From assembly GCF_032444005.1 (NCBI RefSeq), contig NC_091288.1, positions 187,240,001 to 187,304,000 on the forward strand: a stretch of DNA of 64,000 nt. The letters are read 5' to 3'. The notes beneath the pieces are model-generated. The model did not search any database. It saw only the letters and a program-made list of their open reading frames with translations, and was not told where the DNA came from. The position numbers and the translations under genes were made by a program. Of the stretch, positions 9,815 through 64,000 are shown piece after piece. Positions within the stretch are counted from its first letter, which is position 1. Each line of letters opens with the position of its first letter. This stretch comes from Ranitomeya imitator. Lineage: Eukaryota.

Positions 9815-9817
<3 letters not shown>

Positions 9818-9882
<65 letters not shown>
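9818..9882. repeat. (TA)n microsatellite
   Basis: Pure TA run. A shorter paralogous run lies at 58860-58921. Confidence 0.98.
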
Positions 9883-9887
<5 letters not shown>

Positions 9888-11548
9888 GAAAGGGGCTGTA
9901 GAGGGCAGAACCAACACCTGTGTTCCCCGTACACTGCACTAACTGGATATATATCTACGTGACAGGACCTCCAATCACTCCGCCGCGGCTGCAGGACCTC
10001 GAAGCACATGTACCCGGCTGTCGGATCTGCCCCTCCACAGCTGTTAGATCTGGAAATGCGCTGTCCTGCTGCCAGACCTCCAAACGCACCTGCTCGGCTG
10101 TCGGACTTCGAAACACACCGTGACTTTGGTAAAGGTGTTTACGGTTTGGCTAAGGATTCCTATATGTCACAAATATTGGAGATGGGACCGTCCCTACCGT
10201 GCCCTTACACTATAGAGCTGCCATCTAGCAGAACCTCAGCTTCCATCTCAGACGCTCTGGTTACATGTGAAGGAGTCCGGCTTTTCCAGGCCTTATTTAT
10301 TTGTCTTTGTGACTGTGACCGGCCAGTGGCATTGAAGGCTTGTGAAATCCTTCTCGCCGTGTAGCCCAAACTGCAATGGGGACACCGATCCCTCCGAACA
10401 GCATGGAAGGGACTGGCTGGAGCACACGATAACAGAAACGCAAAAGGAAGGCGGGGACGGTGCTGGGGACCGGCAGGAGCGCCCACCAGAATGGGCCACT
10501 GGGGTCATAAAGACAATGGATTTGGATAACATGAAATGCTCCTTGCCGAAAAACAGCGATTATCTTCGCTAGACTCCCCTGCCACTGCTGCAGGACGTCA
10601 AAACCACTTTATGGGGGGATGCAAGATGCATATTGCTACTGGTGTGGATGTTAGAGGGACTTTTCTTAATCAGATTTCACTGCCAAAAATGCCTTTGTGC
10701 TGTAATTGGCAGTGGATCCGACCTGGTATTTCATACAGTGCCCTACTGGGACCCAGGAGCCATCATACAGCTACTCAGTAACCGACCTGCAGCATTTATT
10801 GGGTTCACTGCCCTAACGCCTAAGAAGGAAGTCCTGGTTGTAAGAGAGTAAATGCCTCTGGCACTATAGAGGACAATGTAGTAGGGATCATGTTTCTGTT
10901 ACTGTTTTTTTAACCCGTTTGCTGCCAGTACAGTTTTCACATTAAGACAAACAATGAAAAAGAAGCAACCCCCCCCCTAATAATTTGTACTTTACAATTA
11001 AGGGCCCATTCCTGTGATTTTGCATTACTAAAGCATAACATGATATGTAAAAAAATGCATAAAAATGTGTCTTTTTGGTTTGTGAAGGGAGAAATGAAAG
11101 TAAAAGAGATGCGCCTGTCATATTGTATGTGACGTGACGGAGGGTTAAACAGTAACTGTGGGGGCATCCTGCTGTGTGGGTATCTTACTGTGTAGGGGGC
11201 ATCATACTATGTGGAGGGTAACTGTGGGCATCATCCATTGTGGAGGGTATGATCCATCGTGATCTGGAACAGTAATGACAATATTTGGGATACCCTCAGT
11301 CATAAGGGAAGGAAATTGCATATAATAGAAGCTGGAAAAGATAATTGCAGAAACTGAACAATGAGCGGGAAATTCAAACTTCCCAACAGTTCTGTATTTA
11401 GCCAATCAGCAGAGGAAGGGAGGGGCAAATGTAGATTATGTAAGCCCCGCCCTGGAAAGCGTCATCTCTGAAGTTCTCTCTCTGGTCCATTCTTCCTCCA
11501 TATAAAGGAGCAGTCCGTGCTGTCCAGGAATCAGTTTTTGCTCACTGA

Positions 11549-11869
<321 letters not shown>

Positions 11870-14800
11870 TTGTGTTCTCTTCTGTCCTCACAACCCAAAG
11901 GCTCTTATCAGAGCCGCCCACATCTCAGTGAGAGGCTGCACCTTCCTATTCCTGCGCTATGGTTCCTGGTGGTCTTAAAATCTAGGTTAATAAATGGTTT
12001 AGAAACCTTTCACGAGCCACAAACCTCTTCGTGTAAGGCTAAATGTACCTCGCTGTGCTGTGATCTTCTGTCTCCTGTGCGCTGGTGACTTCTCTACGCT
12101 CTTATGTGATTTCGGCAGTGAACAAGGCAAACGCATGTGCAGAAAGACGGATGATGATACCTGACACTAACGGATAAACACTGTTCCGCGGTCCCGGGTA
12201 CCGACCTCTGATGCTGGGTATGGGCGGATGGTTCTGTTGTAGCTTTGGGTGTTTGAATTTCCCGCCTTGTGGCTTCAGTTTCTTCCTGCAGCTCGTGGTG
12301 TCAGGACTGGCGGCTGTAGGACGATGTTTGTGTACAATGATGGCTTGTTCTGAATGAGTGCCTCACATGTATCTAGGCTTCCCAGATAAGGGAGCAATAT
12401 TCACTGGATAGAGCTGGAGCTCAGCAGAGCTGTGGGTTCCCGGTGGAAGGAGTGAAGCCGCATTATCCAGATTCTGGGATGTGCCTGCAGTGTGTGATCT
12501 GGGACCAGGGTCTTTTCCATTATCTTGACCTAGAAAGACTTACCTGGTTTTCCCAAGCAGATCCCTCTACAGCTCTAATAACGGGCAACTCCCGGCGTTT
12601 TCTAAATCTGATGTTGTCCTAAGATGCTGCTTTTATTGGGCGCTGATTAGTATCGGGCGCAGCGTCTCTGCAGGGCACAATATCCCCCGTGCGGCTGCCT
12701 GTAGTATCGGTCACAGCCTGGGACGTGTCTTCTATACTCTCCCCTCTTATTTTCCTCCCCGTCTTTCCATACTAGAGCCGGCACCGCAAACTTCGGGTGA
12801 TGCGGTTTGTTCTCATTGATCTATTACATAAACCTCACAGATTTATGGGGGCTATATCCGCACACTGCCTCCCAGAGACCCCTCTATGCAGACAGTACAG
12901 ACCCCGGAGTGATGCGGTTACTACAGTCCTGCCGTGAGATGAATGTGTTGATTCTGCTACTTGATGTTATACTGAACAGGGGGCAGCGGATATTCACAGG
13001 GGATGTGGCTGTCTGAGGCAGCTGGATGGACGGACGCCCTGTGTACCGGGTACGGAGACTCCTGTGTGATGGCCACGTCCTGGACACTAAGGTTTCGGAT
13101 GGATGGCGCCTCTGAAGACTATTATAACCTCCCCAGAATAATAATGGTAACCGATAAGAAAACCGATCCCCGTGTTTGGGGGCAGACAGATGGGAGGACA
13201 GGACCCGGTATTGGTGATCGCCGCTCCAGCAGAGGGACCGGTAATAATCCGACGGACGAAGAACAGAGATTGAGCGGGAAATTCAAAACCATCAACGGAT
13301 CTGTAATCAGCCAATGAGCGAGAGACATCCGCAGGCGCCGACCAATCCCAGATACAGGAATATCCGCCTCCATTAACTCCTTAGTGGCCGTGTGTGCTGA
13401 CCCCCATTACACACTCGCTTTACAGACCCGGCAGCGTCACATCAGGCTCCGGGCTTTCTCTCTCTCTCGCAGGCAGAGCTGATCAATCCTTCATGTCAGC
13501 ACCTCTCCAGAATGAGGCTGATGCACTAGATTTTCTCGGCACCGCCATCCGCACGTGGGGTGCTGCTGTAATCCCGTTCATTATCCTCAATTTTCCTCTG
13601 CACATCTCCACATCCAGCCAAGTGATCGCTGGGACCAGTATACTCATCAGCATTGCCAATACTTCGATATGTAGCAAAGGAGGAGTGGTGTAAAAATTTG
13701 GGGGGCATTTTGAGGGCAACCCAAACGTTGTGCCCCACCAAAAAATGCCCCGGTTGACCCAAATCATTCTGAAAAAAATTACCACACACTCTTAAAGTGT
13801 TCCTCTACACACCCTGCGAATTTGTGGTCGACAGACCCAAGCCGGGCTGAGCAGTGACCCTGCGCACCATAGACTTCAATGGGCAGGGTCACTTTGGGGA
13901 GTCTCTGCTCAGCCCAATTTGTGGCTATCAACCACACATTTTCAGGTTGTGTAGCGTACCGTAGCTCTAGTAGACCAGTGCTGTAAAAATTTGGGGGACA
14001 TTTTGAGATCACCCCAAAAATATGCCCACCCCCAAACTTCTGAACAAATTAACCTACACTCTTGAATTGTTCCTCTACACACCCTGAAAATGTGGGGTTG
14101 ATAGGCACAAATCAGGCTGAGCAGTGACACTGTGCGCGATAGGCTTCAATGGGCAGGGCAGCTTTGGGGGGTAACTGCTCAGACCAGATTGGGGCTATCT
14201 ACCTGAAATTTTCATAGTGTGTAGAGGAACAATTCATTAGTTGGGCTATTTTTTCAGAATTGTTAGGTTAATAGGAAGGAGGCTTTTTTTTTTTTTGGGG
14301 GGGGGGGGGGCATAACTTTTGGGGTGCCCTCAAAGTGCCACCCTCAATTTTTTACACTATTGGTTCGCTAGGGGTACTCTACACACCCTGAAAATTTGGG
14401 GTTGATAGCCCCCACATCGTACAATCAGCTCCCTGTGCGATAGACATTGGAGTAAAGGTCCCTGTGATGGAGACAAGAGCCGGGAACAGGAGGAACGAGC
14501 TCCCGCAGCAGATTTATCTCCCCGGTACACAGTGAGGTGCAGATCGGGAGGACGGCGGCGATGATCCTAATCTGAAAGAATGTTTCGGCACTCAAAATTT
14601 ATATGCTTGAAAAAAAGAAAATTTTATTGGAGATATATGTTTCAGAAAATCGTTGTAACGTTTCGGTCATAACATTGACCTTCGTCAAACTGGAGTACAT
14701 AAAACAGAAAGAGATAATATCTTAATATAATACAATCAGTGTCCATCAAAAATGGAAATACAGTATTGAACCAAAATTCATATCAATAAAAATACAAAAG

Positions 14801-15938
14801 AATATTTTTGGTAAAAAGAGAACAGTTCTAGTCTGGTCTAGATAAGACGTTAAATCGGTGATGATTAGCTGCAGAACAGTTTCACATAGATTTAATATAA
14901 ATGTTATATGGCATAATATATGTTCTGATAATAGGTTTACACAGGACAATTGAGATCACATTAGTCATGATTTTTTTTTATATATCAGATGTCTCCAATT
15001 CTGAGAGGAAATATTGAAAAAAACAACCAAGTAAAAACAGAAAATAAAAAATAAAAAAAGGAAAGAAAAAAATAGATGGACTTAGGTCTTACCAAGTATA
15101 TTAAACGTGCATAATCATGTGTGCGGTCCTATTTATCTCTGTGAGTGGGAAAGGACCATCTATGTCCTAATCCTAAAGACAAAGAAACGGAATACCTAAT
15201 TGTACTAAACTGGTATATCAAGATAGGTGATATTCACAATCAGAAACATCGGGCAGGTGATTGCAATCAGCCCCCGATGTGGATCATCTACTAATGTGCA
15301 ACACGTGTCCCCCCCAATACTCTGCACTTATGGGGTACAGTGATATCACAGGTCAGGGAGGGGGCAGTCAGCGGAGGCCGTCGCCTGTGTTACCCTTCTG
15401 GGTTCTCAGCAGCTCCAGCTCGTCCCCACATCTTACAATCAGCTTCCTGTGCGATAAACATTGGAGTAAAGATCCCTGTGATGGTGACAAGAGCCGGGGA
15501 CAGGAGGAACGAGCTCCCGCAGCAGATTTATCTCCCCGGGTACACAGTGAGGTGCAGATCGGGAGGACGGCGGCGATGATCCCGGGATATTCTCTCCGCT
15601 CTTTCCCGGCATCTCTGCTAGTGACGGCTACAAATGGCCGGTGGAGATGTTGGAGAAGGGGAGGCGACGGAGGAAGCGCGCTCTGCTGTCTGGTGTTAGC
15701 CGGTAAAGGGCTTTTATCCCGGGCAGGGAAACACAAGGGGAGAGCGGAGCTTAACCCGGACTCAGCTGGGAGGAGGCGGGGCCTGTGTCCAGTGTCAGCC
15801 AATAGAAGCTCAGGACGGTGCAGCTCAGCAGCCAATCAGTGCGCAGTAAGCCTGTACATATAACAGGCGCCTCCAGCTCCGGCCTCAGTATTTTCCTTCC
15901 TGTCAAGAAGTATTTTCGTTTTGCTTCTGCAGCACATG

Positions 15939-16574
15939 ATGGCAGAGACCGCGCCAGCCGCCGCTCCACCTCCCGCAGAACCGGCCGCCAAATCCAAGAA
16001 GCAGCCGAAGAAATCCGCCGCCAAGAAGAGCAATAAACCCTCCGGCCCCAGCGTCTCCGAGCTGATCGTGAAAGCCGTGTCCGCCTCCAAGGAGCGCAGC
16101 GGGGTGTCTCTGGCCGCCCTGAAGAAGGCTCTGTCTGCCGGAGGATACGATGTAGAGAAGAACAACAGCCGCCTGAAGCTGGCCGTCAGGTCTCTGGTCA
16201 CCAAGGGCGCCCTCCTCCAGGTGAAGGGCAGCGGCGCCTCCGGGTCCTTCAAGCTGAACAAGAAGCAGGAGACGAAGGACAAAGTGGCCAAGAAGAAGCC
16301 AGCAGCTGCGGCCAAACCCAAGAAACCCGCTGCTGCCAAGAAAGCCGCCAAATCTCCGAAGAAGCCCAAAAAGGCTCCGACCGCGGCCAAGAAGAGCCCG
16401 AAAAAGGCCAAGAAGCCCGCAGCTGCCAAGAAAGCGGCCAAGAGCCCCAAGAAGCCGAAAGCCGCTCCCAAGCCCAAGAAGGTGACGAAGAGTCCGGCTA
16501 AGAAGGCGGCCAAACCCGCCAAGAGTCCGGCTAAGAAGGCTGCGAAAGCCAAGAAGCCCGCGGCTAAGAAATAA
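15939..16574 (+). CDS. H1: Linker histone H1
   Basis: Same protein as 5034-5669; stem-loop GGCTCTTATAAGAGCC at 16603-16618. Confidence 0.98.
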
Positions 16575-16618
16575 GCTGCAGCCCCTGTTCTGTTACCACA
16601 AAGGCTCTTATAAGAGCC

Positions 16619-19600
16619 ACCACCTCCTCCCCGCAGAGCTGTATGATCAGTGCCACCACCTCCTCCCCGCAAAGCTGTATGATCAGTGCCATCACCTCCT
16701 CCCCGCAGAGCTGTATGATCAGTGCCACCACCTCCTCCCCGCAGAGCTGTATGATCAGTGCCACCACCTCCTCCCCGCAGAGCTGTATGATCAGTGCCAC
16801 CACCTCCTCCCCGCAGAGCTGTATGATCAGTGCCACCACCTCCTCCCCGCAGAGCTGTATGATCAGTGCCACCACCTCCTCCCCGCAGAGCTGTATGATC
16901 AGAGCCATCACCTCCTCCCCGCAGAGCTGTATGATCAGAGCCATCACCTTTTCCCCGCAGAGCTGTATGATCAGAGCCACCTTCTCCACGCAGAGCTGTA
17001 TGATCAGTGCCACCACCTCCTCCTCGCAGAGCTGTATGATCAGAGCCACCACCTCCTCCCCGCAGAGCTGTATGATCAGAGCCATCACCTCCCCGCAGAG
17101 CTGTATGATCAGAGCCATCGCCTTCTCCCCGCAGAGCTGTATGATCAGTGCCACCACCTCCTCGCAGAGCTGTATGATCAGTGCCACCTTCTCCCCGCAG
17201 AGCTGTATGATCAGAGCCATCACCTTCTCCTCGCAGAGCTGTATGATCAGTGCCACCACCTCCTCGCCGAGCTGTATGATCAGTGCCACCTTCTCCCCGC
17301 AGAGCTGTATGATCAGAGCCATCACCTTCCCGCAGAGCTGTATGATCAGAGCCATCACCTTCCCGCAGAGCTGTATGATCAGTGCCACCACCTCCTCGCA
17401 GAGCTGTATGATCAGTGCCACCTTCTCCCCGCAGAGCTGTATGATCAGAGCCACCACCTCCTCCCCGCAGAGCTGTATGATCAGAGCCATCACCTCCTCC
17501 CCGCAGAGCTGTATGATCAGTGACACCACCTCCTCGCAGAGCTGTATGATCAGTGCCACCTTCTCCCCGCAGAGCTGTATGATCAGAGCCATCACCTTCT
17601 CCCCGCAGATCTGTATGATCAGAGCCACCTTCTCCCCGCAGAGCTGTATGATCAGAGCCACCTTCTCCCCGCAGAGCTGTATGATCAGAGCCACCACCTC
17701 CTCCACGCAGAGCTGTATGATCAGAGCCACCACCTCCTCCCCGCAGAGCTGTATGATCAGTGCCACCACCTCCTCGCAGAGCTGTATGATCAGAGCCACC
17801 TTCTCCCCGCAGAGCTGTATGATCAGAGCCATCACCTTCTCCCCGCAGAGCTGTATGATCAGAGCCACCTTCTCCCCGCAGAGCTGTATGATCAGTGCCA
17901 CCACCTCCTCGCAGAGCTGTATGATCAGTGCCACCTTCTCCCCGCAGAGCTGTATGATCAGAGCCATCACCTTCCCGCAGAGCTGTATGATCAGAGCCAT
18001 CACCTTCCCGCAGAGCTGTATGATCAGTGCCACCACCTCCTCGCAGAGCTGTATGATCAGTGCCACCTTCTCCCCGCAGAGCTGTATGATCAGAGCCACC
18101 ACCTCCTCCCCGCAGAGCTGTATGATCAGAGCCATCACCTCCTCCCCGCAGAGCTGTATGATCAGTGACACCACCTCCTCGCAGAGCTGTATGATCAGTG
18201 CCACCTTCTCCCCGCAGAGCTGTATGATCAGAGCCATCACCTTCTCCCCGCAGATCTGTATGATCAGAGCCACCTTCTCCCCGCAGAGCTGTATGATCAG
18301 AGCCACCTTCTCCCCGCAGAGCTGTATGATCAGAGCCACCACCTCCTCCACGCAGAGCTGTATGATCAGAGCCACCACCTCCTCCCCGCAGAGCTGTATG
18401 ATCAGTGCCACCACCTCCTCGCAGAGCTGTATGATCAGAGCCACCTTCTCCCCGCAGAGCTGTATGATCAGAGCCATCACCTTCTCCCCGCAGAGCTGTA
18501 TGATCAGAGCCACCTTCTCCCCGCAGAGCTGTATGATCAGTGCCACCACCTCCTCGCAGAGCTGTATGATCAGAGCCACCACCTCCTCCCCGCAGAGCTG
18601 TATGATCAGAGCCATCACCTCCCCGCAGAGCTGTATGATCAGAGCCATCACCTTCTCTCCGCAGAGCTGTATGATCAGAGCCACCTTCTCCCCGCAGAGC
18701 TGTATGACCAGAGCCATCACCTTCTCCCCGCAGAGCTGTATGATCAGTGCCACCACCTCCTCGCAGAGCTGTATGATCAGAGCCACCTTCTCCCCGCAGA
18801 GCTGTATGATCAGAGCCATCACCTTCTCCCCGCAGAGCTGTATGATCAGAGCCACCTTCTCCCCGCAGAGCTGTATGATCAGTGCCACCACCTCCTCGCA
18901 GAGCTGTATGATCAGAGCCACCACCTCCTCCCCGCAGAGCTGTATGATCAGAGCCATCACCTCCCCGCAGAGCTGTATGATCAGAGCCATCACCTTCTCT
19001 CCGCAGAGCTGTATGATCAGAGCCACCTTCTCCCCGCAGAGCTGTATGATCAGAGCCATCACCTTCTCCTCGCAGAGCTGTATGATCAGTGCCACCACCT
19101 CCTCGCAGAGCTGTATGATCATTGCCACCACCTCCTCCCCGCAGAGCTGTATGATCAGTGCCACCACCTCCTCTCCGCAGAGCTGTATGATCAGAGCCAT
19201 CACCTCCTCCCCGCAGAGCTGTATGATCAGAGCCATCACCTTTTCCCCGCAGAGCTGTATGATCAGAGCCACCTTCTCCACGCAGAGCTGTATGATCAGT
19301 GCCACCACCTCCTCCTCGCAGAGCTGTATGATCAGAGCCACCACCTCCTCCCCGCAGAGCTGTATGATCAGAGCCACCTTCTCCCCGCAGAGCTGTATGA
19401 TCAGAGCCACCACCTCCTCCACGCAGAGCTGTATGATCAGTGCCACCACCTCCTCCTCGCAGAGCTGTATGATCAGAGCCACCACCTCCTCCCCGCAGAG
19501 CTGTATGATCAGAGCCATCACCTCCCCGCAGAGCTGTATGATCAGAGCCATCGCCTTCTCCCCGCAGAGCTGTATGATCAGTGCCACCACCTCCTCGCAG

Positions 19601-39317: not shown

Positions 39318-40004
<687 letters not shown>

Positions 40005-40994
40005 ATCTGCCCCGACAGCGACCACAACACAAAGGCTCTTTTCAGAGCCACCAAATCCTCCCACAAATGAGCCGAGTCCTGAACGGTCCCTCTTCTGCGC
40101 GTATTCTCCGTGTAGGAAGCGCAGGCACGGCCGATCAGTTAATAGACGGCGGCTGCTGCTTCAGATATTGTAGGTGATCAGCGATATTAGTTATTAAAGG
40201 ACGGGGTAAAGTGTGTACAGTGCACAGCCCAGGTCTGTGGTTGTGGATATGCGGTTCCTGTACAGCACAAAGTAAATGGGGTGGATCTGCAGGAACGCGG
40301 TCACTAAGGAGTTAATGGAGTAAAAGTAATCGGTGATTGGTCGGTTCCTGAGCACGGTTCTTTAGGTTGATGTTTTGTGGTCATTTACCGATCCGGTGGA
40401 TTTGAAATTGCTGCTCGCGCTCCCGAGGATCATAACCGATCACAATCTGCTGTCGCACGCGCTGGGTCCTAGTGCCGCCTTCTCAGTCCTGCGGCTTTAG
40501 GTTGTTTTCTATTTTTCTGATCGGAGATCTCTGCGCTTAGTTTCTGTTAATAACCTCATTTGTCCCCCAGATCGGTTAAGGCGCCTTTATGTGAATCTAT
40601 TCTGCCTGACACTGATCTGAGCAGATCCCTCCGTGTGCTGCGATGGTCGCTACAGATCACATTTGTGGTGGGTCGTTATGTAATTCTGGAATATTTGACT
40701 TTTCCCATCTTCTCCAGGGCTGGACCCGCAGGGGGACTGGTTACATGCAGCTCCCTGCTCTGAGGGACTGGTAATGGCCGGCACCACGTGTAATGATGAG
40801 TGACTGCCGGGGAGCAGATGAGTTCTCTGTAGATCATTGTCCCTAAAATATACTTTTATTCTACTTTCTAACATTTGGCAGAAGCTGGAAACTAGCAACA
40901 GAAATAACAATGAAAAAAATCTAGATGACCAACAGATCGAGCAGCGGCGCCGAGATTAGAAGAATAGAGAAGCGGGAAAATAAGAGCACAATAA

Positions 40995-41505
<511 letters not shown>

Positions 41506-42016
41506 TTGTGTTCTGTCCTCACAACCCAAAGGCTCTTATCAGAGCCGCCCACATCTCAGTGAGAGGCTGCACCTGACTGCTCGGACCTGACTTCTGCGCT
41601 CCCTTGGTGCTATCGCTGTAATGCTGGTACAATGCTCATCAGTGCCGACTTCTCCGCATACTACGGGGTCGGAAATCTTACATTGTGGCGGATGGTAATT
41701 CTGACACTGCTCCGCGGTCCCGGTACCGTCCTCTGATGCTGTGTGGGCGGATGGTTCTGTTGCTCTTATCAGAGCCGCCACATTGATAAGAACAAGCTGT
41801 GATCTCCGCTGTGTGATGCGGCATCTGCTGTAATATGCGCCACCGGCGGCTAAACCGGAAGATCATCGGATGGAATATCCACAGCTATATACATTTATAT
41901 TTCAGCACTGGGCACTTACTGCACTATACCGCTGTATCACAGTGTGCAGCACTATATGGGGGTACAAAGAACTGTTCGGAAAGATGCATTACTGTATAGA
42001 GGTGATTATTCGTATT

Positions 42017-42073
42017 CACATGTAAAGCGCCATGGAATATATGGCGCTATAAAAATGTATAATAATAATAAAA
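42017..42073 (+). mobile_element. Short L2-type 3' tail fragment
   Basis: tgtaaagcgccatggaatatatggcgctat...aataataataa (hairpin plus (AAT)n), resembling the L2 tail at 55308. Copies near 45777 and 49573. Confidence 0.55.
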
Positions 42074-43077
42074 AATATTTCTACATGGAAGGTTCACAGC
42101 TGTATGTGGGGATTTCTGCATTACAGGGGGCATACAGCGGTATACAGATGGGCACTGCATTGTTATATGGAGGTATACAGAATTACACGGGGTTCCCAGC
42201 ACCATCTGGAGACATTACTGCAATATACGGAGTGTAACATGTCGGCGCTGCACTGTAACTGTCTGCATAATGTGGCACAATCATTTGTCAGTAAGTTGTA
42301 GTATATGGGGGTACTGTGCACTATACAGATGAATAGCAGCACTATATTGGAGTATACTGCAGCACATGAAGGGTAAACAGAGCTACATGAACACATAGAG
42401 CACTATATGAGGGTGCACTGCGGTATATGGCGCTTCACAGCACTATTTAGATGTATTCAGCATTATATGTGCTTTACAGCGCTATATGGAGGGTGCTGAA
42501 AAGCGAAATATCAGCTGCAGAACCACCAATGAGCTGCAGTGGGCGGAGCGTAAGACGGTCCCATTGGTCACATGACTTCATCACCCAATAGCACGGCGGT
42601 CTGACAGCAGCGCTCATCTGCATGGCCGGGCTATCACTTCCTCCCCGCAGAGCTGTATGATCAGAGCCATCACTTCCTCCTCGCAGAGCTGTATGATCAG
42701 TTCTCGGACTTGTAATGATTTTAATATAACAGACGCTGGTCGCAGTTTCAGGATGGGGGGTGGGGTGATCTGATGATAATGCGGGAGCTGCAGTGTACAG
42801 CGCTATATACGGGGACATTTCAGCACAGATACACCAGCTGCTCCAGCAGCGGCAAATAATCAATAAGCGCCTCAGAAAAGTGGGGTCGAGATAACACTGG
42901 TATAGCCCCCCTATTAATATTACCCAGATGTCTCGGGTTATAAGGACAACTCCAATAAACATACAAAACCAAAGAAAGGAGTGAACCAGTCCCACAAAAC
43001 ATAATACAAATCAATAATGCTTTATTATTACAGAAAATTATATCCACAAAAATACATAAAACACATAAATCCAGTAA

Positions 43078-43764
<687 letters not shown>

Positions 43765-44902
43765 ATCTGCCCCGACAGCGACCACAACACAAAGGCTCTT
43801 TTCAGAGCCACCAAATCCTCCCACAAATGAGCCGAGTCCTGAACGGTCCCTCTTCTGCGCGTATTCTCCGTGTAGGAAGCGCAGGCACGGCCGATCAGTT
43901 AATAGACGGCGGCTGCTGCTTCAGATATTGTAGGTGATCAGCGATATTAGTTATTAAAGGACGGGGTAAAGTGTGTACAGTGCACAGCCCAGGTCTGTGG
44001 TTGTGGATATGCGGTTCCTGTACAGCACAAAGTAAATGGGGTGGATCTGCAGGAACGCGGTCACTAAGGAGTTAATGGAGTAAAAGTAATCGGTGATTGG
44101 TCGGTTCCTGAGCACGGTTCTTTAGGTTGATGTTTTGTGGTCATTTACCGATCCGGTGGATTTGAAATTGCTGCTCGCGCTCCCGAGGATCATAACCGAT
44201 CACAATCTGCTGTCGCACGCGCTGGGTCCTAGTGCCGCCTTCTCAGTCCTGCGGCTTTAGGTTGTTTTCTATTTTTCTGATCGGAGATCTCTGCGCTTAG
44301 TTTCTGTTAATAACCTCATTTGTCCCCCAGATCGGTTAAGGCGCCTTTATGTGAATCTATTCTGCCTGACACTGATCTGAGCAGATCCCTCCGTGTGCTG
44401 CGATGGTCGCTACAGATCACATTTGTGGTGGGTCGTTATGTAATTCTGGAATATTTGACTTTTCCCATCTTCTCCAGGGCTGGACCCGCAGGGGGACTGG
44501 TTACATGCAGCTCCCTGCTCTGAGGGACTGGTAATGGCCGGCACCACGTGTAATGATGAGTGACTGCCGGGGAGCAGATGAGTTCTCTGTAGATCATTGT
44601 CCCTAAAATATACTTTTATTCTACTTTCTAACATTTGGCAGAAGCTGGAAACTAGCAACAGAAATAACAATGAAAAAAATCTAGATGACCAACAGATCGA
44701 GCAGCGGCGCCGAGATTAGAAGAATAGAGAAGCGGGAAAATAAGAGCACAATAAGCGGGAAATTCAAAATTAGCAACTGTTCTGTGCTCAACCAATCAGA
44801 GACTAAAGGGAGGAGCTAACTGTAAATTCAGTACCAGAAATCTCGCCCCGGAAACGCGTCATCTCTGCGGTTCTCGCTCCGGTCCGCTCACTCTCTATAT
44901 AA

Positions 44903-45265
<363 letters not shown>

Positions 45266-46873
45266 TTGTGTTCTGTCCTCACAACCCAAAGGCTCTTATC
45301 AGAGCCGCCCACATCTCAGTGAGAGGCTGCACCTGACTGCTCGGACCTGACTTCTGCGCTCCCTTGGTGCTATCGCTGTAATGCTGGTACAATGCTCATC
45401 AGTGCCGACTTCTCCGCATACTACGGGGTCGGAAATCTTACATTGTGGCGGATGGTAATTCTGACACTGCTCCGCGGTCCCGGTACCGTCCTCTGATGCT
45501 GTGTGGGCGGATGGTTCTGTTGCTCTTATCAGAGCCGCCACATTGATAAGAACAAGCTGTGATCTCCGCTGTGTGATGCGGCATCTGCTGTAATATGCGC
45601 CACCGGCGGCTAAACCGGAAGATCATCGGATGGAATATCCACAGCTATATACATTTATATTTCCGCACTGGGCACTTACTGCACTATACCGCTGTATCAC
45701 AGTGTGCAGCACTATATGGGGGTACAAAGAACTGTTCGGAAAGATGCATTACTGTATAGAGGTGATTATTCGTATTCACATGTAAAGCGCCATGGAATAT
45801 ATGGCGCTATAAAAATGTATAATAATAATAAAAAATATTTCTACATGGAAGGTTCACAGCTGTATGTGGGGATTTCTGCATTACAGGGGGCATACAGCGG
45901 TATACAGATGGGCACTGCATTGTTATATGGAGGTATACAGAATTACACGGGGTTCCCAGCACCATCTGGAGACATTACTGCAATATACGGAGTGTAACAT
46001 GTCGGCGCTGCACTGTAACTGTCTGCATAATGTGGCACAATCATTTGTCAGTAAGTTGTAGTATATGGGGGTACTGTGCACTATACAGATGAATAGCAGC
46101 ACTATATTGGAGTATACTGCAGCACATGAAGGGTAAACAGAGCTACATGAACACATAGAGCACTATATGAGGGTGCACTGCGGTATATGGCGCTTCACAG
46201 CACTATTTAGATGTATTCAGCATTATATGTGCTTTACAGCGCTATATGGAGGGTGCTGAAAAGCGAAATATCAGCTGCAGAACCACCAATGAGCTGCAGT
46301 GGGCGGAGCGTAAGACGGTCCCATTGGTCACATGACTTCATCACCCAATAGCACGGCGGTCTGACAGCAGCGCTCATCTGCATGGCCGGGCTATCACTTC
46401 CTCCCCGCAGAGCTGTATGATCAGAGCCATCACTTCTTCCCCGCAGAGATGTATGATCAGAGCCATCACTTCCTCCTCGCAGAGCTGTATGATCAGTTCT
46501 CGGACTTGTAATGATTTTAATATAACAGACGCTGGTCGCAGTTTCAGGATGGGGGGTGGGGTGATCTGATGATAATGCGGGAGCTGCAGTGTACAGCGCT
46601 ATATACGGGGACATTTCAGCACAGATACACCAGCTGCTCCAGCAGCGGCAAATAATCAATAAGCGCCTCAGAAAAGTGGGGTCGAGATAACACTGGTATA
46701 GCCCCCCTATTAATATTACCCAGATGTCTCGGGTTATAAGGACAACTCCAATAAACATACAAAACCAAAGAAAGGAGTGAACCAGTCCCACAAAACATAA
46801 TACAAATCAATAATGCTTTATTATTACAGAAAATTATATCCACAAAAATACATAAAACACATAAATCCAGTAA

Positions 46874-47560
<687 letters not shown>

Positions 47561-48698
47561 ATCTGCCCCGACAGCGACCACAACACAAAGGCTCTTTTCA
47601 GAGCCACCAAATCCTCCCACAAATGAGCCGAGTCCTGAACGGTCCCTCTTTTGCGCGTATTCTCCGTGTAGGAAGCGCAGGCACGGCCGATCAGTTAATA
47701 GACGGCGGCTGCTGCTTCAGATATTGTAGGTGATCAGCGATATTAGTTATTAAAGGACGGGGTAAAGTGTGTACAGTGCACAGCCCAGGTCTGTGGTTGT
47801 GGATATGCGGTTCCTGTACAGCACAAAGTAAATGGGGTGGATCTGCAGGAACGCGGTCACTAAGGAGTTAATGGAGTAAAAGTAATCGGTGATTGGTCGG
47901 TTCCTGAGCACGGTTCTTTAGGTTGATGTTTTGTGGTCATTTACCGATCCGGTGGATTTGAAATTGCTGCTCGCGCTCCCGAGGATCATAACCGATCACA
48001 ATCTGCTGTCGCACGCGCTGGGTCCTAGTGCCGCCTTCTCAGTCCTGCGGCTTTAGGTTGTTTTCTATTTTTCTGATCGGAGATCTCTGCGCTTAGTTTC
48101 TGTTAATAACCTCATTTGTCCCCCAGATCGGTTAAGGCGCCTTTATGTGAATCTATTCTGCCTGACACTGATCTGAGCAGATCCCTCCGTGTGCTGCGAT
48201 GGTCGCTACAGATCACATTTGTGGTGGGTCGTTATGTAATTCTGGAATATTTGACTTTTCCCATCTTCTCCAGGGCTGGACCCGCAGGGGGACTGGTTAC
48301 ATGCAGCTCCCTGCTCTGAGGGACTGGTAATGGCCGGCACCACGTGTAATGATGAGTGACTGCCGGGGAGCAGATGAGTTCTCTGTAGATCATTGTCCCT
48401 AAAATATACTTTTATTCTACTTTCTAACATTTGGCAGAAGCTGGAAACTAGCAACAGAAATAACAATGAAAAAAATCTAGATGACCAACAGATCGAGCAG
48501 CGGCGCCGAGATTAGAAGAATAGAGAAGCGGGAAAATAAGAGCACAATAAGCGGGAAATTCAAAATTAGCAACTGTTCTGTGCTCAACCAATCAGAGACT
48601 AAAGGGAGGAGCTAACTGTAAATTCAGTACCAGAAATCTCGCCCCGGAAACGCGTCATCTCTGCGGTTCTCGCTCCGGTCCGCTCACTCTCTATATAA

Positions 48699-49061
<363 letters not shown>

Positions 49062-50081
49062 TTGTGTTCTGTCCTCACAACCCAAAGGCTCTTATCAGAG
49101 CCGCCCACATCTCCGTGAGAGGCTGCACCTGACTGCTCGGATCTGACTTCTGCTCTCCCCTGGTGCTATCGCTGTAATGCTGGTACAATGCTCATCAGTG
49201 CCGACTTCTCCGCATACTACGGGGTCGGAAATCTTACATTGTGGCGGATGGTAATTCTGACACTGCTCCGCGGTCCCGGTACCGTCCTCTGATGCTGTGT
49301 GGGCGGATGGTTCTGTTGCTCTTATCAGAGCCGCCACATTGATAAGAACAAGCTGTGATCTCCGCTGTGTGATGCGGCATCTGCTGTAATATGCGCCACC
49401 GGCGGCTAAACCGGAAGATCATCGGATGGAATATCCACAGCTATATACATTTATATTTCCGCACTGGGCACTTACTGCACTATACCGCTGTATCACAGTG
49501 TGCAGCACTATATGGGGGTACAAAGAACTGTTCGGAAAGATGCATTACTGTATAGAGGTGATTATTCGTATTCACATGTAAAGCGCCATGGAATATATGG
49601 CGCTATAAAAATGTATAATAATAATAAAAAATATTTCTACATGGAAGGTTCACAGCTGTATGTGGGGATTTCTGCATTACAGGGGGCATACAGCGGTATA
49701 CAGATGGGCACTGCATTGTTATATGGAGGTATACAGAATTACACGGGGTTCCCAGCACCATCTGGAGACATTACTGCAATATACGGAGTGTAACATGTCG
49801 GCGCTGCACTGTAACTGTCTGCATAATGTGGCACAATCATTTGTCAGTAAGTTGTAGTATATGGGGGTACTGTGCACTATACAGATGAATAGCAGCACTA
49901 TATTGGAGTATACTGCAGCACATGAAGGGTAAACAGAGCTACATGAACACATAGAGCACTATATGAGGGTGCACTGCGGTATATGGCGCTTCACAGCACT
50001 ATTTAGATGTATTCAGCATTATATGTGCTTTACAGCGCTATATGGAGGGTGCTGAAAAGCGAAATATCAGCTGCAGAACCA

Positions 50082-50637
<556 letters not shown>

Positions 50638-50741
50638 TCGGCTCCGTGCTCTGCTCCTCACCCCAAACACTTAGATAGGAGAAAAAAGGATCATCCCCGC
50701 GCTGCCGCATGAAGAATTTCAAAAATTGTAGAGGTTTCAAC

Positions 50742-50797
50742 GTGGTTTATTCTACGCGTTTCAGGGTTCAGGTGACCCCTTCATCAGGACATACCAC
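50742..50797 (-). ncRNA. Mirror-image hammerhead ribozyme
   Basis: Exact reverse complement of 50816-50871 within the palindrome. Confidence 0.72.
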
Positions 50798-50815
50798 AAA
50801 TATTGTACAATATTT

Positions 50816-50871
50816 GTGGTATGTCCTGATGAAGGGGTCACCTGAACCCTGAAACGCGTAGAATAAACCAC
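50816..50871 (+). ncRNA. Type I hammerhead ribozyme (PLE minimal type)
   Basis: CTGATGA 50826-50832, stem II AGGG/CCCT, GAAA 50851-50854, palindromic stem III ACGCGT, GUA cleavage triplet ending at 50860, stem I gtggt/accac. Confidence 0.75.
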
Positions 50872-51116
50872 GTTGAAACCTCTACAATTTTTGAAATTCT
50901 TCATGCGGCAGCGCGGGGATGATCCTTTTTTCTCCTATCTAAGTGTGTGCTTCAATCAGGTCCTGCACTGACCTGTGGATCTGCAGCAGCCGCCATTAAT
51001 ATATGTCCTTCCTTCAATCTCACCAGGTGAGTAGTTCTCTTGGTGGGCAACTTTGTGTAACGTTTGATAAGACCCTATTTGCGCTTTTGTGTCTCCCTCT
51101 TTTCCCTCACCCCAAA

Positions 51117-51132
51117 GGCTCTTCTAAGAGCC
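51117..51132 (+). terminator. H2B 3' stem-loop (displaced about 480 nt from the stop codon)
   Basis: GGCTCT-TCTA-AGAGCC followed by ACCCA. Confidence 0.9.
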
Positions 51133-52112
51133 ACCCACAGCCTCGCTATAAGAGCCACCCACAGCCTCGCTATAAGAGCCACCCACAGCCTCGCTATAAG
51201 AGCCACCCGCAGCCTCGCTATAAGAGCCACCCGCAGCCTCGCTATAAGAGCCACCCGCAGCCTCACTATAAGAGCCACCCGCACCCTCACTATAAGAGCC
51301 CCCCACAGCCTCACTATAAGAGCCACCCACAGCCTCGCTATAAGAGCCACCCACAGCCTCGCTATAAGAGCCACCCACAGCCTCGCTATAAGAGCCACCC
51401 GCAGCCTCGCTATAAGAGCCACCCGCAGCCTCGCTATAAGAGCCACCCGCAGCCTCGCTATAAGAGCCACCCGCACCCTCACTATAAGAGCCCCCCACAG
51501 CCTCACTATAAGAGCCACCCACAGCCTCACTATAAGAGCCCCCCACAGCCTCGCTATAAGAGCCCCCCACAGCCTCGCTATAAGAGCCACCCACAGCCTC
51601 GCTATAAGAGCCCCCCACAGCCTCGCTATAAGAGCCCCCCACAGCCTCACTATAAGAGCCCCCCACAGCCTCACTATAAGAGCCACCCACAGCCTCACTA
51701 TAAGAGCCCCCCACAGCCTCACTATAAGAGCCCCCCACAGCCTCACTATAAGAGCCACCCACAGCCTCACTATAAGAGCCCCCCACAGCCTCACTATAAG
51801 AGCCACCCACAGCCTCACTATAAGAGCCCCCCACAGCCTCACTATAAGAGCCACCCACACCCTCACTATAAGAGCCCCCCACAGCCTCACTATAAGAGCC
51901 CCCCACAGCCTCACTATAAGAGCCCCCCACAGCCTCACTATAAGAGCCCCCCACAGCCTCACTATAAGAGCCCCCCACAGCCTCACTATAAGAGCCACCC
52001 ACAGCCTCGCTATAAGAGCCACCCACACCCTCGCTATAAGAGCCCCCCACACCCTCACTATAAGAGCCCCCCACACCCTCAGAGCCACCCACAGCCTCAC
52101 TATAAGAGCTGC
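51126..52112 (+). repeat. H2B-3'-end minisatellite, 24-bp unit, about 41 copies
   Basis: AAGAGCC(A/C)CCC(A/G)CA(G/C)CCTC(G/A)CTAT tandem from the stem-loop arm to a terminal AAGAGCTGC at 52104-52112. Length 978 = 40x24+18. Confidence 0.98.
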
Positions 52113-52730: not shown

Positions 52731-54536
52731 AGATTGCTGAGAGTTCCCTGCTCAGAACATTACCCTGTGGTGTCGGGATCTCACAGGTCAGACAGTTACA
52801 TTATCGGTGTCACATCCTCCTCACAGGATCCCTGCTCAGTTACTGATCGTCCTTCTGTTCTATCACTTTTTCTCCCCCGCTTCATCCAGTGTCAGGACTG
52901 GCGTCTCTCGGGCAATATATCCACATGTAGAAGCTCCGAGAATGAGGAGGGGAACAACGATTCTTAGGAGAAATATCCCAATATAATCGCAGGATAAGAT
53001 CCTCTAGCACCGGATGTAATGATGAATAACGAATGTCACAGATCTCGGAGGAGACTGTTCAGGGTGACAAACGGAGAAGCCAAAAACAAGAGTCAGACCC
53101 AAACATCAACCACCATCAGCAAAAATGAAAATAGTGGGTCCATCAATGATCGGGTGCCACCATGTGCCCGGAAAGCAAAGGGTTAATATAACATGAGATA
53201 AAATCACTGCAGTGCAGAGAGCTCCGATCACAAATCTGACTGTAAGATGCCCAAGTACTGGTGACCTCATCATAGCACAAATGTCACTAATGCCGGGAAT
53301 ATAAGGACTGATCTCCTGCAGAAGAGCCAGGAAAAAAGAGCAAGTGGGATGAGTCCTGGGGTTAATGGAATGTTCTCTGTGGAAACCGAAGATCCTGAGG
53401 ACGGGGCCGGTGTCGGGCTGTGTCTATGCCGGTGTGAGATCCCCTGTGCGGCTGCCTGTAATATCCGCAGTGGTCACAGCCTGGGCAGTGTCCGTTATAT
53501 CCTCCTGACATATACTGGGGCGGTGTCTGCTCCCTTTACTATTTTTGATCTCCCGTCATTCATCTTGGAACTGGTCCGCTGACGTCGTGTGATGCGGTCT
53601 CTTCATATTGATCTATAAAATATAACACGGATTTACAGGGGAACAGGCTGTACAGTAATATTCTCCTGATCAGATCCGTGTGGGGTGAATAGGGCAGCAA
53701 ATATTCACAGGGGATGTGGCTGTGTGAGGCAGCTGGATAGACGGACGCCCTGTGTACCGGGTACGGAGACTCCTGTGTGATGACCACGTCCCGGACACTA
53801 ATGTTTCGGATGGATGGCGCCTCTGAAGACTATTATAACCTCCCCAGAATAATAATGGCCACCGATAAGAAAACCGATCCCCGTGTTTGGGGGCAGACAG
53901 ATGGGAGGACAGGACCCGGTATTATCGGTGATCGCCCCTCCAGCAGAGGGGCCGGTAATAATCCGACGGACAAAGAACAGAGATTGAGCGGGAAATTCAA
54001 AACCATCAACGGATCTGCAATAAGCCAATGAGCGAGAGACATCCGCAGGCGCCGACCAATCCCAGATACAGGAATATCCGCCTCCATTTAACTCTTTAGT
54101 GGCCGTGTGTGCTGACCCCCACTACACACTCGCTTTACAGATCCGGCGACTTCCCCCACCCGAGACCCGGCAGCGTCACATCAGGCTCCGGGCAGAACAT
54201 AGGAGACTTGTCTCAGTCAGGCTGTGATAGGATCAGCGCGGACACCACAGGGGATCTGCACAGGATAATAAGCGGGTGAGAGAGGAGCCTCCTCCTGTGC
54301 AGATGGAGCGGAGGAGAAGCACTGACAGGGATTAACCCCTCACCCGCCCGACTGTCATTGTAATTTATTGCTGATAGCAGTCACAAATTCAACAAGTGCA
54401 AACTACAAATCAACAGAATATTTCTGCATTTCCTTCTGCTCCATGACAAATATCTGTTTTCACCCCTTATCTATTCTGTTCAAAACAAACGTTTTCTATT
54501 GGGTGAGAAACTCATTTGAGCAAGGAGCAGTAATAA

Positions 54537-55091
<555 letters not shown>

Positions 55092-55120: not shown

Positions 55121-55162
55121 GGCTCTTCTAAGAGCCACCCACACCGTCACCACAAGAGCCGG
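55121..55162 (+). terminator. H2A stem-loop and HDE-like element
   Basis: GGCTCT-TCTA-AGAGCC at 55121-55136, ACCCA, AAGAGCCGG at 55154-55162. Confidence 0.9.
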
Positions 55163-55307: not shown

Positions 55308-58300
55308 TATTATTATTTATTATATTTGTTCCATGGCGCTTTACATGTGAGGAGGGGTATACATAATGAAAACAAGTACAATAATCTTAAACAATACAAG
55401 TCATAACTGGTACAGGAGGAATGAGGACCCTGCCCACGAAGGCTCACAATCTACAAGGGATGGGTGAGAATACAGTAGGTGAGGGTAGAGATGGTCATGC
55501 AGCGGTTTGGTCGATCGGTGGTAACTGCAGGTTGTAGGCTTGTCTGAAGAGGTGTGTCTTCAGGTTCTTTTTGAAGGTTTCAATGGTAGGCGAGAGTCTG
55601 ATGTGTTGTGGTAGAGGGTTCCAGAGTAGGGGTGATACGCGAGAGAAATCTTGTATACGATTGTGGGAAGAGGAGATAAGAGGGGAGTAGAGTAGGAGAT
55701 CTTGTGAGGATCGGAGGTTGCGAGTAGGTAAGTACCGGGAGACGAGGTCACAGATGTATGGAGGAGACAGGCTGTGGATGGCTTTGTACGTTAGGGTTTT
55801 ATAGTGGAGTCTCTGGGCAATGGGGGGCCAGTGAAGGGATTGACAGAGGGGAGAGGCCGGGGAATAGGGGGGGACAGGTGGATTAGTCGGGCAGCAGAGT
55901 TTAAAATAGATTGGAGGGGTGCGAGAGTGTTAGAGGGGAGGCCACAGAGCAGGAGGTTGCAGTAGTCAAGGCGAGAGATGAGGGCATGGACTAGGGTTTT
56001 TGCAGATTCATGGTTGAGGAATGAACGGATTCGGGAAATATTTTTGAGTTGAAGTCGGCAGGAAGTGGAAAGGGCTTGGATATGTGGTTTGAAGGAGAGA
56101 TCAGCATCAAGGATTACCCCGAGGCAGCGAGCTTGTGGGACTGGGGAGAGTGGGCAGCCATTTACTGTAATGGATAGGTTCGTTGGGGGGGGGTCGCTTG
56201 AGATGGGGGAAAGATGATGAATTCTGTTTTGTCCATGTTAAGTTTCAGAAATCTAGCGGAGAAGGATGAAATAGTGGACAGACATTGAGGGATTCTGGTT
56301 AGAAGGGAGGTGATATCTGGTCCAGAGATGTAGATCTGTGTGTCGTCAGCATACAGGTGATACTGAAAGCCATGAGATTCTATGAGCTGTCCCAGGCCAA
56401 AGGTGTAAATGGAGAAGAGCAAGGGCCCAAGGACTGAACCTTGTGGGACTCCGACAGATAGGGGGCGAGGTGAGGAGGTGGTGTGTGAGTGGGAGACGCT
56501 GAATGTCCGGTCTGTTAGGTATAATGAGATCCAGGATAGGGCCAAGTCTGCGATGCCAAGGGAGGAGAGGGTTTGTAATAATAGGGAATGGTCCACTGTG
56601 TCAAAGGCAGCCGACAGGTCGAGGAGGACAGAGTAGTGTCGCTTGCTCTTGGCGGTTAAGAGGTCATTGGTGACTTTAGTTAGGGCAGTTTCGGTGGAAT
56701 GGTGTGACCGGAAGCCAGATTGTAGGCGGTCAAAGAGGGAGCAAGAAGAGAGATGGGAGGACAGTTCAAGGTAGACGTGTTGTTCCAGTAGTTTTGAGGC
56801 AAAGGGGAGAAGTGATATAGGGCGATAGCTAGATACAGAGGATGGGTCAAGAGAGGGCTTTTTGAGGATAGGTGTGATTGAGGCATGTTTAAAGCTTGAG
56901 GGGAAAACACCAGTTGTTAGTGATAGGTTGAAGAGATGGGTTAGGGTTGGGATGAAGATTGTGGTGAGGTGTGGGATGGGAGTGGGTCAAGTGCACAGGT
57001 GGTGAGATGCGATCTTGAGAGTAGAGTGGAGAGTTGATCTTCTGTAATGGTGGAGAAGTTGGTTTTGGAGGTGGAGGGCTGGGAAATCGGGAGGAAGAGC
57101 TCTGGGGGTTTTTGACCAAAACTGTCTCTAATACTATCAATCTTCTGCTTGAAAAATGAGGCAAAGTCTTCAGCAGAGATAAGTGGGGAGGGAGGAGGTG
57201 CTGGGGGACGGAGGAGAGAATTGAAGGTGTTGAATAACTGTTTAGGGTTGTGAGAGAGAGAGGAGATGAGAAGTAGGTTTGTTTAGCTGTGGCGAGTGTG
57301 GTCTTGAAAGTAGTGAGGGACTGTTTGAATGCGATGAAGTGCTCGTTAGAGTGGGATCTTTTCCATCTGCGCTCAGCAGCCCTGGAAGCTCGCCTCAGTT
57401 CTTTGGTCAGGCTGGTGTGCCAGGGCTGTCTATTGATTTTGCGAGCTTTGGTATGTGTAAGTGGGGCAGCAGATTCCAAAGCTAGAGCTATTGTGGTGTT
57501 ATATAGAGCAGCAGCGTCATCCGCATTGTGTATGGAACTTATGCCTGTGAGGGGGAGGAGGGATTCAGAGAATGAGTGTAGGTCAAGATGTTTAATATTT
57601 CTGCGAGGGTGTGAAAGTTTGTGGGGTGGGGATTGTAGACATGGAGTGGAGAGAGATGAGAATGTGAGAAGGTTGTGGTCAGAGAGTGGAAGAGGTGAGT
57701 TAGAGGTGTTAGATAGAGAGCAGAGGCGGGTGAAGATGAGGTCCAATGTGTGACCGTCTTTGTGAGTGGCTGCAGAAGACCATTGAGTGAGGCCGAAGGA
57801 GGAAGTGAGAGTTAGAAGTTTAGTGGCAGCTGAGAGGGAAGTGTCAATGGGGATGTTGAAGTCACCCATGATGATAGTGGGGATGTCCGCAGAAAGGAAA
57901 TGAAGTAGCCAGGTGGTGAAGTGGTCAAAGAAGATGGTGGCTGGCCCTGGGGGGCGGTAAATGACAGCCAGTTGGAGGTTGGTGGGGGAATAGATGCGCA
58001 CAGAGTGCACCTCAAAGGAAGGGAGGGTAACAGAGGGTGGCAGTGGGATTGGGGTGAAGGAACAGTTATCTGACAGGAGAAAACCAACTCCTCCGCCATG
58101 TTTGCTGCTGGGGCGGGGTGTGTGGGAAAGGTGGAAGCCACCATAAGAGAGTGCAGCAGGGGAGACTGTGTCAGAAGGGGTGAGCAAGGTTTCGGTGATG
58201 GCGAGGAAGGAAAGTTTGGTAGTAACAAAGAGATCATGGATGTAGGAGAGCTTGTTGCAGACAGAGTGGGCGTTCCACAGAGCTCCTGTTAGTGGGACTG

Positions 58301-58859: not shown

Positions 58860-58919
<60 letters not shown>

Positions 58920-58921
58920 TA
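58860..58921. repeat. (TA)n microsatellite
   Basis: TA run with one CA interruption. Confidence 0.97.
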
Positions 58922-62626: not shown

Positions 62627-64000
62627 ACCACCTCCTCCCCGCAGAGCTGTATGATCAGTGCCACCACCTCCTCCCCGCAGAGCTGTATGATCAGTGCCAT
62701 CACCTCCTCCCCGCAGAGCTGTATGATCAGTGCCACCACCTCCTCCCCGCAGAGCTGTATGATCAGTGCCACCACCTCCTCCCCGCAGAGCTGTATGATC
62801 AGAGCCATCACCTCCCCGCAGAGCTGTATGATCAGAGCCATCACCTCCCCGCAGAGCTGTATGATCAGAGCCATCGCCTTCTCCCCGCAGAGCTGTATGA
62901 TCAGTGCCACCACCTCCTCGCAGAGCTGTATGATCAGTGCCACTTTCTCCCCGCAGAGCTGTATGATCAGAGCCATCACCTTCTCCTCGCAGAGCTGTAT
63001 GATCAGAGCCACCTTCTCCCCGCAGAGCTGTATGATCAGTGCCACCACCTCCTCGCAGAGCTGTATGATCAGAGCCACCTTCTCCCCGCAGAGCTGTATG
63101 ATCAGAGCCATCACCTCCCCGCAGAGCTGTATGATCAGAGCCATCACCTTCTCCCCACAGAGCTGTATGATCAGAGCCACCTTCTCCCCGCAGAGCTGTA
63201 TGATCAGTGCCACCACCTCCTCGCAGAGCTGTATGATCAGAGCCACCTTCTCCCCGCAGAGCTGTATGATCAGAGCCATCACCTTCCCGCAGAGCTGTAT
63301 GATCAGTGTCACCACCTCCTCGCAGAGCTGTATGATCAGTGTCACCACCTCCTCGTCGCAGAGCTGTATGATCAGAGCCACCTTCTCCCCGCAGAGCTGT
63401 ATGATCAGAGCCATCACTTCCTCACCGCAGAGCTGTATGATCAGAGCCATCACCTCCCCGCAGAGCTGTATGATCAGAGGTATCACCTTCTCCCCGAAGA
63501 GCTGTATGATCAGTGCCACCACCTCCTCGCAGAGCTGTATGATCAGAGCCACCTTCTCCCCGCAGAGCTGTATGATCAGAGCCATCACCTTCTCCCCGCA
63601 GAGCTGTATGATCAGAGCCACCTTCTCCCAGCAGAGCTGTATGATCAGTGCCACCACCTCCTCGCAGAGCTGTATGATCAGAGCCACCACCTCCTCCCCG
63701 CAGAGCTGTATGATCAGAGCCATCACCTCGCCGCAGAGCTGTATGATCAGAGCCATCACCTTCTCTCCGCAGAGCTGTATGATCAGAGCCACCTTCTCCC
63801 CGCAGAGCTGTATGATCAGTGCCATCACCTCCTCGCAGAGCTGTATGATCAGAGCCACCTTCTCCCAGCAGAGCTGTATGATCAGAGCCATCACCTCCTC
63901 CCCGCAGAGCTGTATGATCAGAGCCATCACCTCCTCCCCGCAGAGCTGTATGATCAGTGACACCACCTCCTCCCCGCAGAGCTGTATGATCAGAGCCATC
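62627..64000 (+). repeat. H1-3'-end satellite array 3 (runs off the window)
   Basis: Same 33/36-bp unit starting right after the stem-loop. Confidence 0.98.

Follow-up and report, generated by a model that had tools for sequence, protein, structure and literature searches.

How does a satellite array come to lie inside the 3'-processing signal of a histone gene, and what does it do to that signal? The question is raised by a frog histone cluster in which the 3' end of an H2B gene runs directly into a 24-bp tandem repeat. The cluster fills the window, i.e., the whole 64-kb stretch of DNA that was analyzed, and contains H4, H1, H3, H2B and H2A genes together with fragments of LINE elements. An earlier note on this DNA, which was made from the sequence alone, described the array and proposed both an origin for it and an effect on processing; these proposals are considered below along with the alternatives.

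The H2B gene and its locus

The coordinates of the features are collected in Table 1. Within the H2B coding sequence, 275 bases (50358-50632) are masked as N, and the stop codon, TGA, is present at 50635-50637. The region upstream of H2B contains a TATA element at 50188, two CCAAT boxes and ATCTGCAT, which matches the octamer element at seven of its eight positions. The exact H2A protein of the locus is encoded in four anuran assemblies according to an exact-protein look-up.

Several other elements occur around the genes. A 72-bp element located upstream of H2B (50076-50147) has an inverted copy with 79% identity upstream of H2A (54496-54566), and it also recurs downstream of H4 in the H3-H4 sub-repeats described below. 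This element is probably a shared promoter module. Two cluster units carry, on their minus strand, open reading frame fragments that encode LINE-type reverse transcriptase and endonuclease (7078-8986 and 56162-58237), and (AT)n microsatellites (9818-9882 and 58861-58921) adjoin them.

Table 1. Features of the H2B locus and of the related histone 3' ends in the window
Feature	Position	Strand	Basis or remark
H2B coding sequence, 126 codons and stop	50257-50637	+	Open reading frame list: N-terminal tail, frame open across the mask
Left 12-bp target-site duplication, CCTCACCCCAAA, original 3' UTR end	50656-50667	+	Identical to 51105-51116
Dispersed-repeat insertion, 437 bp, between stop codon and hairpin	50668-51104		Target-site duplication, run contigs
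Right target-site duplication copy	51105-51116	+	Identical to 50656-50667
H2B histone stem-loop, GGCTCTTCTAAGAGCC	51117-51132	+	GGCTCT-TCTA-AGAGCC; 6-bp stem, loop TCTA
ACCCA after H2B hairpin	51133-51137	+	Read from the sequence; identical pentamer in H2A
24-bp tandem array, 40 full units and one 18-bp unit	51126-52103	+	Tandem Repeats Finder, split on AAGAGC
Two 8-unit, 192-bp higher-order blocks (51126-51317 and 51318-51509)	51126-51509	+	AAABBCDE versus AAABBBDE
First AAGAGCC copy, putative HDE position	51150-51156	+	12 nt past ACCCA, spacing as in H2A
Shortened 18-bp unit, 6-bp deletion	52062-52079	+	Tandem Repeats Finder and unit split
AAGAGCTGC, best U7-complementary H2B element, likely ancestral HDE	52104-52112	+	Predicted duplex -16.4 kcal/mol
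H2A 3' end, comparison state, unexpanded AAGAGCC pair 24 nt apart	55121-55162	+	Sequence comparison, Rfam
H1-linked 33/36-bp array, 0.7 kb	5711-6438
H1-linked 33/36-bp array, 22 kb	16620-38940
H1-linked 33/36-bp array, >1.4 kb, past the window end	62628-64000

Processing elements at the H2B 3' end

The H2B hairpin has the form of a histone hairpin: a 16-nt stem-loop with a 6-bp stem and a loop of 4 nt in which positions 1 and 3 are U. The Rfam model Histone3 matches it at 51112-51156 with 32.4 bits (E 1.6e-6; gathering score 34), which is close to the 33.2 bits obtained for the H2A hairpin. No further hairpins were matched by Histone3 inside the 24-bp array. The pentamer ACCCA that follows the hairpin is the expected cleavage region, and the first AAGAGCC copy of the array supplies a purine-rich U7-complementary element (HDE) 12 nt further on, within the distance of about 10-15 nt that is usual for an HDE. 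The gene-proximal end of H2B therefore has the layout of a processing signal, with the same spacing between ACCCA and AAGAGCC as in the neighboring H2A. The best U7 match of H2B is now about 1 kb off, beyond the last unit of the array.

Structure of the array

The array of about 41 copies ending in an HDE-like sequence, as described in the earlier note, was confirmed by Tandem Repeats Finder (51125-52109, period 24, 41.3 copies, 94% matches, score 1585) and by splitting the sequence on AAGAGC. The split yielded 39 exact 24-bp units from 51126, followed by a 42-bp stretch composed of an 18-bp unit and a full unit. At the distal end the array passes into AAGAGCTG at 52104; in the split, the last full unit is followed at this position by AAGAGCTGCGG. 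The array had been placed after the stem of the H2B hairpin; its position at the hairpin holds, but it begins within the 3' arm of the stem-loop, which the first unit overlaps. Outside the H2B array, the 24-mer core was not found in the 64-kb window.

Only four of the 24 unit columns vary, namely column 8 (A/C), column 12 (A/G), column 15 (G/C) and column 20 (G/A). The G/A column of the unit as first written is thus real, but it is not the only variable one. Columns 12 and 20 are alternatives between CpG and CpA. All of the variable columns are outside the AAGAGCC core, which is invariant across the units.

The string of unit types along the array is AAABBCDE AAABBBDE FGGAGEEFEEFEFEHEEEEEAIJ. 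The first two groups of eight units (units 1-8 and 9-16) form blocks of 192 bp that differ by one mismatch in 192, and a three-unit EEF pattern occurs after them. The blocks and the EEF pattern point to recent unequal exchange or duplication of several units at a time, beyond slippage of single units. The A-to-C change in column 8 was observed in 17 of 39 units within 51294-52061, mostly in the distal half of the array; it converts ACCCA into a run of six C (six G on the opposite strand), so that the ACCCA consensus is lost in these units.

Origin of the array

The period of 24 is the distance between two built-in direct repeats, namely AAGAGCC of the stem arm and the HDE-like AAGAGCT, and the array is delimited by TAAGAGCC (51125) on one side and TAAGAGCT (52103) on the other. 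The proposal that the unit length is the distance from stem arm to HDE is borne out by the array period and by these boundaries. When the array is collapsed, so that the H2B hairpin runs straight on into the last unit and then the flank beyond it, the result is a histone 3' end of the usual kind, as had been expected: in a gapless comparison, 37 of 45 positions match the neighboring H2A 3' end.

The origin comparison took in all five histone classes of the window. The H2A 3' end contains the hairpin as in H2B, ACCCA, a 12-nt spacer and AAGAGCC, and thus carries a 7-bp direct repeat at a distance of 24 nt without expansion. The H3 3' end contains GAGCC twice, also 24 nt apart. The ancestral H2B state was reconstructed from H2A and from the two ends of the array. 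In the general model, a minisatellite arises when slippage or unequal exchange involves two short direct repeats that flank an interval. The suggested origin, in which TAAGAGCC slipped against TAAGAGCT, fits both the array boundaries and the unexpanded seed in H2A.

A mechanism can be outlined on this basis. The vertebrate histone 3' end carries a built-in direct repeat, because the AAGAGCC arm pairs with GGCUCUU of the hairpin while the HDE core AAGAGCU pairs with AGCUCUU of U7. These two RNA-pairing constraints impose the similarity between arm and HDE, and the seed repeat consequently recurs across histone classes. In the H2B lineage, in which arm and HDE lie 24 nt apart, slippage or unequal exchange probably doubled the 24-bp interval, and later unequal exchange involving several units, to which the higher-order blocks testify, enlarged and partly homogenized the array. 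Each expansion restores the gene-proximal order of hairpin, ACCCA, 12-nt spacer and AAGAG core. Since the unit spans the interval from stem arm to HDE and this order is rebuilt each time, the array appears to have been tolerated rather than purged.

Birth in place by slippage followed by growth through unequal exchange is, as a reading of the sequence, well supported. Taken together with the evidence presented in the following sections, it is likely that the H2B 3'-processing signal itself gave rise to this minisatellite on the spot and that the array represents a tolerated, fast-evolving by-product of a signal prone to slippage.

H1-linked arrays and H3-H4 sub-repeats

Arrays of a 33/36-bp unit are linked to H1, and their lengths are very different between adjacent cluster units. 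Similar to the H2B array, the H1-linked array starts at the 3' arm of the hairpin stem and ACC and is built from 3'-processing sequence. In contrast, its unit contains a complete HDE, AGAGCTGT, together with extra sequence, and differs from the H2B unit in its period, its unrelated spacer and the far greater length of the resulting array (22 kb). The AGAGCTGT element of each H1 unit matches U7 better than does any unit of the H2B array. It had been claimed that the two units are unrelated apart from the stem-arm and ACC part; in agreement with this, their spacers align no better than shuffled sequences, with 1787 of 2000 shuffles reaching the observed score. The H2B and H1 arrays are therefore considered separate expansions at like sites.

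An H3-H4 sub-repeat of 3.76 kb is present in three tandem copies at 39450-50200. Copy 1 (39450) directly follows the 22-kb H1 array, and a short remnant of the H1-type 36-bp repeat lies ahead of both copy 2 (near 43210) and copy 3 (near 47006). These remnants were found at 42474-42995, from the translation of open reading frames only, and at 46393-46496, by Tandem Repeats Finder. The duplication of the H3-H4 sub-repeat is probably younger than the H1 array.

Abundance in sequencing runs

Words of 31 letters from the array were present in public DNA runs under the labels of organisms A, B, C, E and G. The 24-bp repeat is no invention of the assembly, since its words occur in these independent runs. 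In run X1 (DNA, organism A), the summed word depth was about 460,000 for the array and about 2,500-17,000 for the flanking insertion, while in run X6 (DNA, organism B) the corresponding values were 148 and 8. The array contigs of organism B were 2-4 letters off the window sequence in about 37. The 24-mer is a high-copy family that occurs across several organism labels and is not private to this H2B copy. No match to a dimer of the unit was obtained in metagenome contigs (0 matches). Array words were nearly absent from RNA: a single 54-nt contig at depth 2.2 was found in one run, and none (0) in the other.

Possible effect of the array on processing: U7 pairing and folding

The earlier note suggested that AAGAGCC, as a weaker element in the HDE position, could reduce processing efficiency. 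Pairing energies were calculated with the 5' end of mouse/human U7 (PMC7026596) as a proxy, from which the frog's own U7 may differ. With this mammalian proxy, the elements of the H2B first unit, H2A, H4, H1 and H3 gave -11.7, -11.8, -11.7, -14.0 and -7.4 kcal/mol, respectively, and the terminal AAGAGCTG of H2B gave -16.4 kcal/mol. As had been supposed, the first unit pairs less strongly than the putative ancestral HDE of H2B (-11.7 versus -16.4), but it equals the elements of H2A and H4 and surpasses that of H3, and its 12-nt spacing is the same as in H2A. The comparison, made with the mammalian U7, does not support a loss of processing through a weak HDE. The H3 3' end (40034-40075; also at 43794 and 47590) shows the weakest pairing with the proxy; its HDE-like element is AAATGAGCC, in which GAGCC occurs again 24 nt after the stem arm, and its canonical stem probability is only 0.59.

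The array might impair processing in another way. The 5' arm of the hairpin can pair perfectly with any AAGAGCC copy, and if it did so with a downstream one, the SLBP site as well as the HDE-like element could be hidden and processing would be poor. Partition-function folding gave a canonical H2B stem probability of 0.97 without further units and of 0.04-0.24 with one or more. The values for H2A, H1, the collapsed H2B and H4 were 0.97, 0.97, 0.97 and 0.96, respectively. With the array, an alternative long hairpin was predicted at -12.8 kcal/mol versus -9.4 kcal/mol for the canonical one, whereas H2A has no such alternative. The prediction is thus that downstream copies rival the 3' arm of the hairpin for pairing with its 5' arm, and this predicted destabilization would argue against regarding the array as free of cost. 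The calculation, however, is an equilibrium prediction only. During transcription the local hairpin is the first structure to form, and SLBP then locks it, so that co-transcriptional folding and SLBP binding would favor it over the equilibrium alternative. In addition, one published study (PMC1635294) reports that SLBP binding remodels the structure of the histone 3' UTR so that U7 can anchor. Impairment of processing by the array is judged unlikely, and a tolerated minisatellite remains the preferred explanation.

The insertion in the H2B 3' UTR

The H2B hairpin is 480 nt from the stop codon, compared with the few tens of nucleotides expected for a histone hairpin, because of the 437-bp insertion; without the insertion the distance would be 30 nt, in line with the other histone genes. 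In the other histone genes of the window, the 3' UTR ends in CAAA immediately 5' of GGCTC. Contigs from the runs were matched to 50633-51210, a region that includes the insertion, the hairpin and the first units. In X1, 868 contigs fell on this region, 519 of which were only 90-95% alike, and the word depth was in the thousands across the insertion. Twelve X1 contigs depart exactly after 51104 into differing flanks.

The insertion holds a near-perfect palindrome of 282 bp at about 50664-50949 (self-BLAST: 282 bp inverted, 99.6%). Motifs of the type CUGAUGA...GAAAC are present in the palindrome, and the mirror arm would compete with them. A reading of the palindrome as twin hammerheads was rejected, as Rfam gave no match to a hammerhead model even at E values as high as 1; the only Rfam matches were generic, of the hairpin-type miRNA kind, and below gathering scores.

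A hairpin located several hundred nucleotides from the stop codon impairs regulated histone mRNA decay. This H2B copy may therefore be functionally compromised by the insertion. It could be asked further whether the insertion disabled the gene and the repeat then grew under relaxed selection, given that the hairpin is 480 nt past the stop codon, that a 282-nt hairpin was added to the 3' UTR and that no RNA contig bridges the H2B 3' UTR or hairpin. In RNA runs X3 and X17, for which contigs only were searched, no contig covered either feature. Both RNA runs contain the 437-bp repeat, and the RNA contigs on it come from other loci, since they also diverge at 51104. Against a dead gene copy, the H2B frame length, stop codon and promoter elements look intact despite the insertion, and gaps in contig coverage prove nothing. 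Furthermore, the array is found under other organism labels, which makes it older than the insertion in this copy. Growth of the array on a disabled gene is for these reasons considered quite unlikely.

Does the array have a function?

A functional role can be imagined in which AAGAG-rich read-through RNA holds U7 snRNP or processing factors, and the array serves as a fail-safe for termination or as a platform on which the histone locus body, or sphere, nucleates. In amphibians, U7-rich spheres attach to the histone loci, and in newts transcription of the histone clusters continues into satellite DNA. Both facts are in favor of such a role, as are the invariance of AAGAGCC in every unit, the retention of the family under several organism labels and the presence of an analogous array after H1. 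But invariance over 41 recently exchanged units says little on selection, the units are without a 5' stem arm and produce no extra Rfam hairpins, and the match to U7 is short, with a 6-nt core. The array words are also close to absent in the RNA runs (2.2 and 0), yet they are by far the most abundant in DNA. A functional array is thus very unlikely. Most likely, the array has no function of its own and, as it stands, is a tolerated by-product.

The idea that a dispersed satellite already in existence came to lie beside H2B by chance, or that the array is an artifact of assembly, would agree with the very high abundance of the 24-mer in DNA runs but is scarcely credible, because the unit consists of stem arm and ACCCA in seamless register with hairpin and HDE, mirrors the single-copy flank of H2A and occurs as words in independent runs.

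Significance

A minisatellite derived in this way from the H2B 3' end represents a clean, datable case in which a working signal for RNA processing has given rise to a satellite family. The two ancestral ends of the array and an unexpanded sister site in H2A are still visible. The case also suggests why the site is permissive, i.e., each duplication rebuilds the order of hairpin, spacer and HDE. Arrays of zero units and of tens of units constitute a natural series for the influence of HDE strength, HDE distance and competing arms on U7-dependent cleavage. If read-through occurs, the locus would be linked to the classic transcription of amphibian satellites and to the U7-rich bodies at histone loci.

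A far wider proposal is that histone 3' ends are intrinsically prone to satellites, because arm and HDE are both AAGAGC-like, that in this frog lineage the H2B and H1 signals seeded families of up to tens of kb, and that transcripts with U7 cores and decoy arms would tune H2B processing or hold U7 snRNP. As a whole this proposal is a long shot. A full-text search for the 24-mer or its reverse complement found no paper containing either, and a literature search on satellites built from histone stem-loop or HDE sequence, or on those of frog histone clusters, returned nothing relevant.

Comparison with known systems

The H2B 3' end shares the hairpin, ACCCA and an AAGAG core about 12 nt on with the canonical 3' end of replication-dependent histone genes, which is processed by SLBP and the U7 snRNP with a molecular ruler. 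It differs from the canonical end in that a hybrid between stem arm and HDE stands where the HDE belongs, its best U7 match is about 1 kb off and its hairpin is 480 nt from the stop codon.

The array resembles the model of minisatellite birth in several respects. Its period is the spacing of a 7-8-bp repeat, copies of this repeat bound the array, H2A shows the seed and higher-order blocks are present. Unlike in minisatellite birth in general, the seed repeat in H2B is imposed by the similarity between the 5' arm of the stem and the 5' end of U7, and it is therefore conserved and recurrent.

The nearest precedent lies in the satellites of newt histone clusters, which are also amphibian satellite arrays located directly downstream of histone genes. 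Satellite 1 of the newt (Notophthalmus) is histone-linked and is read through on lampbrush chromosomes. The newt satellites differ from the 24-bp array in their units of 222-330 bp, which are not known to derive from a processing signal. For newt satellite 2, one report (PMC2114352) documents read-through from upstream promoters into satellites.
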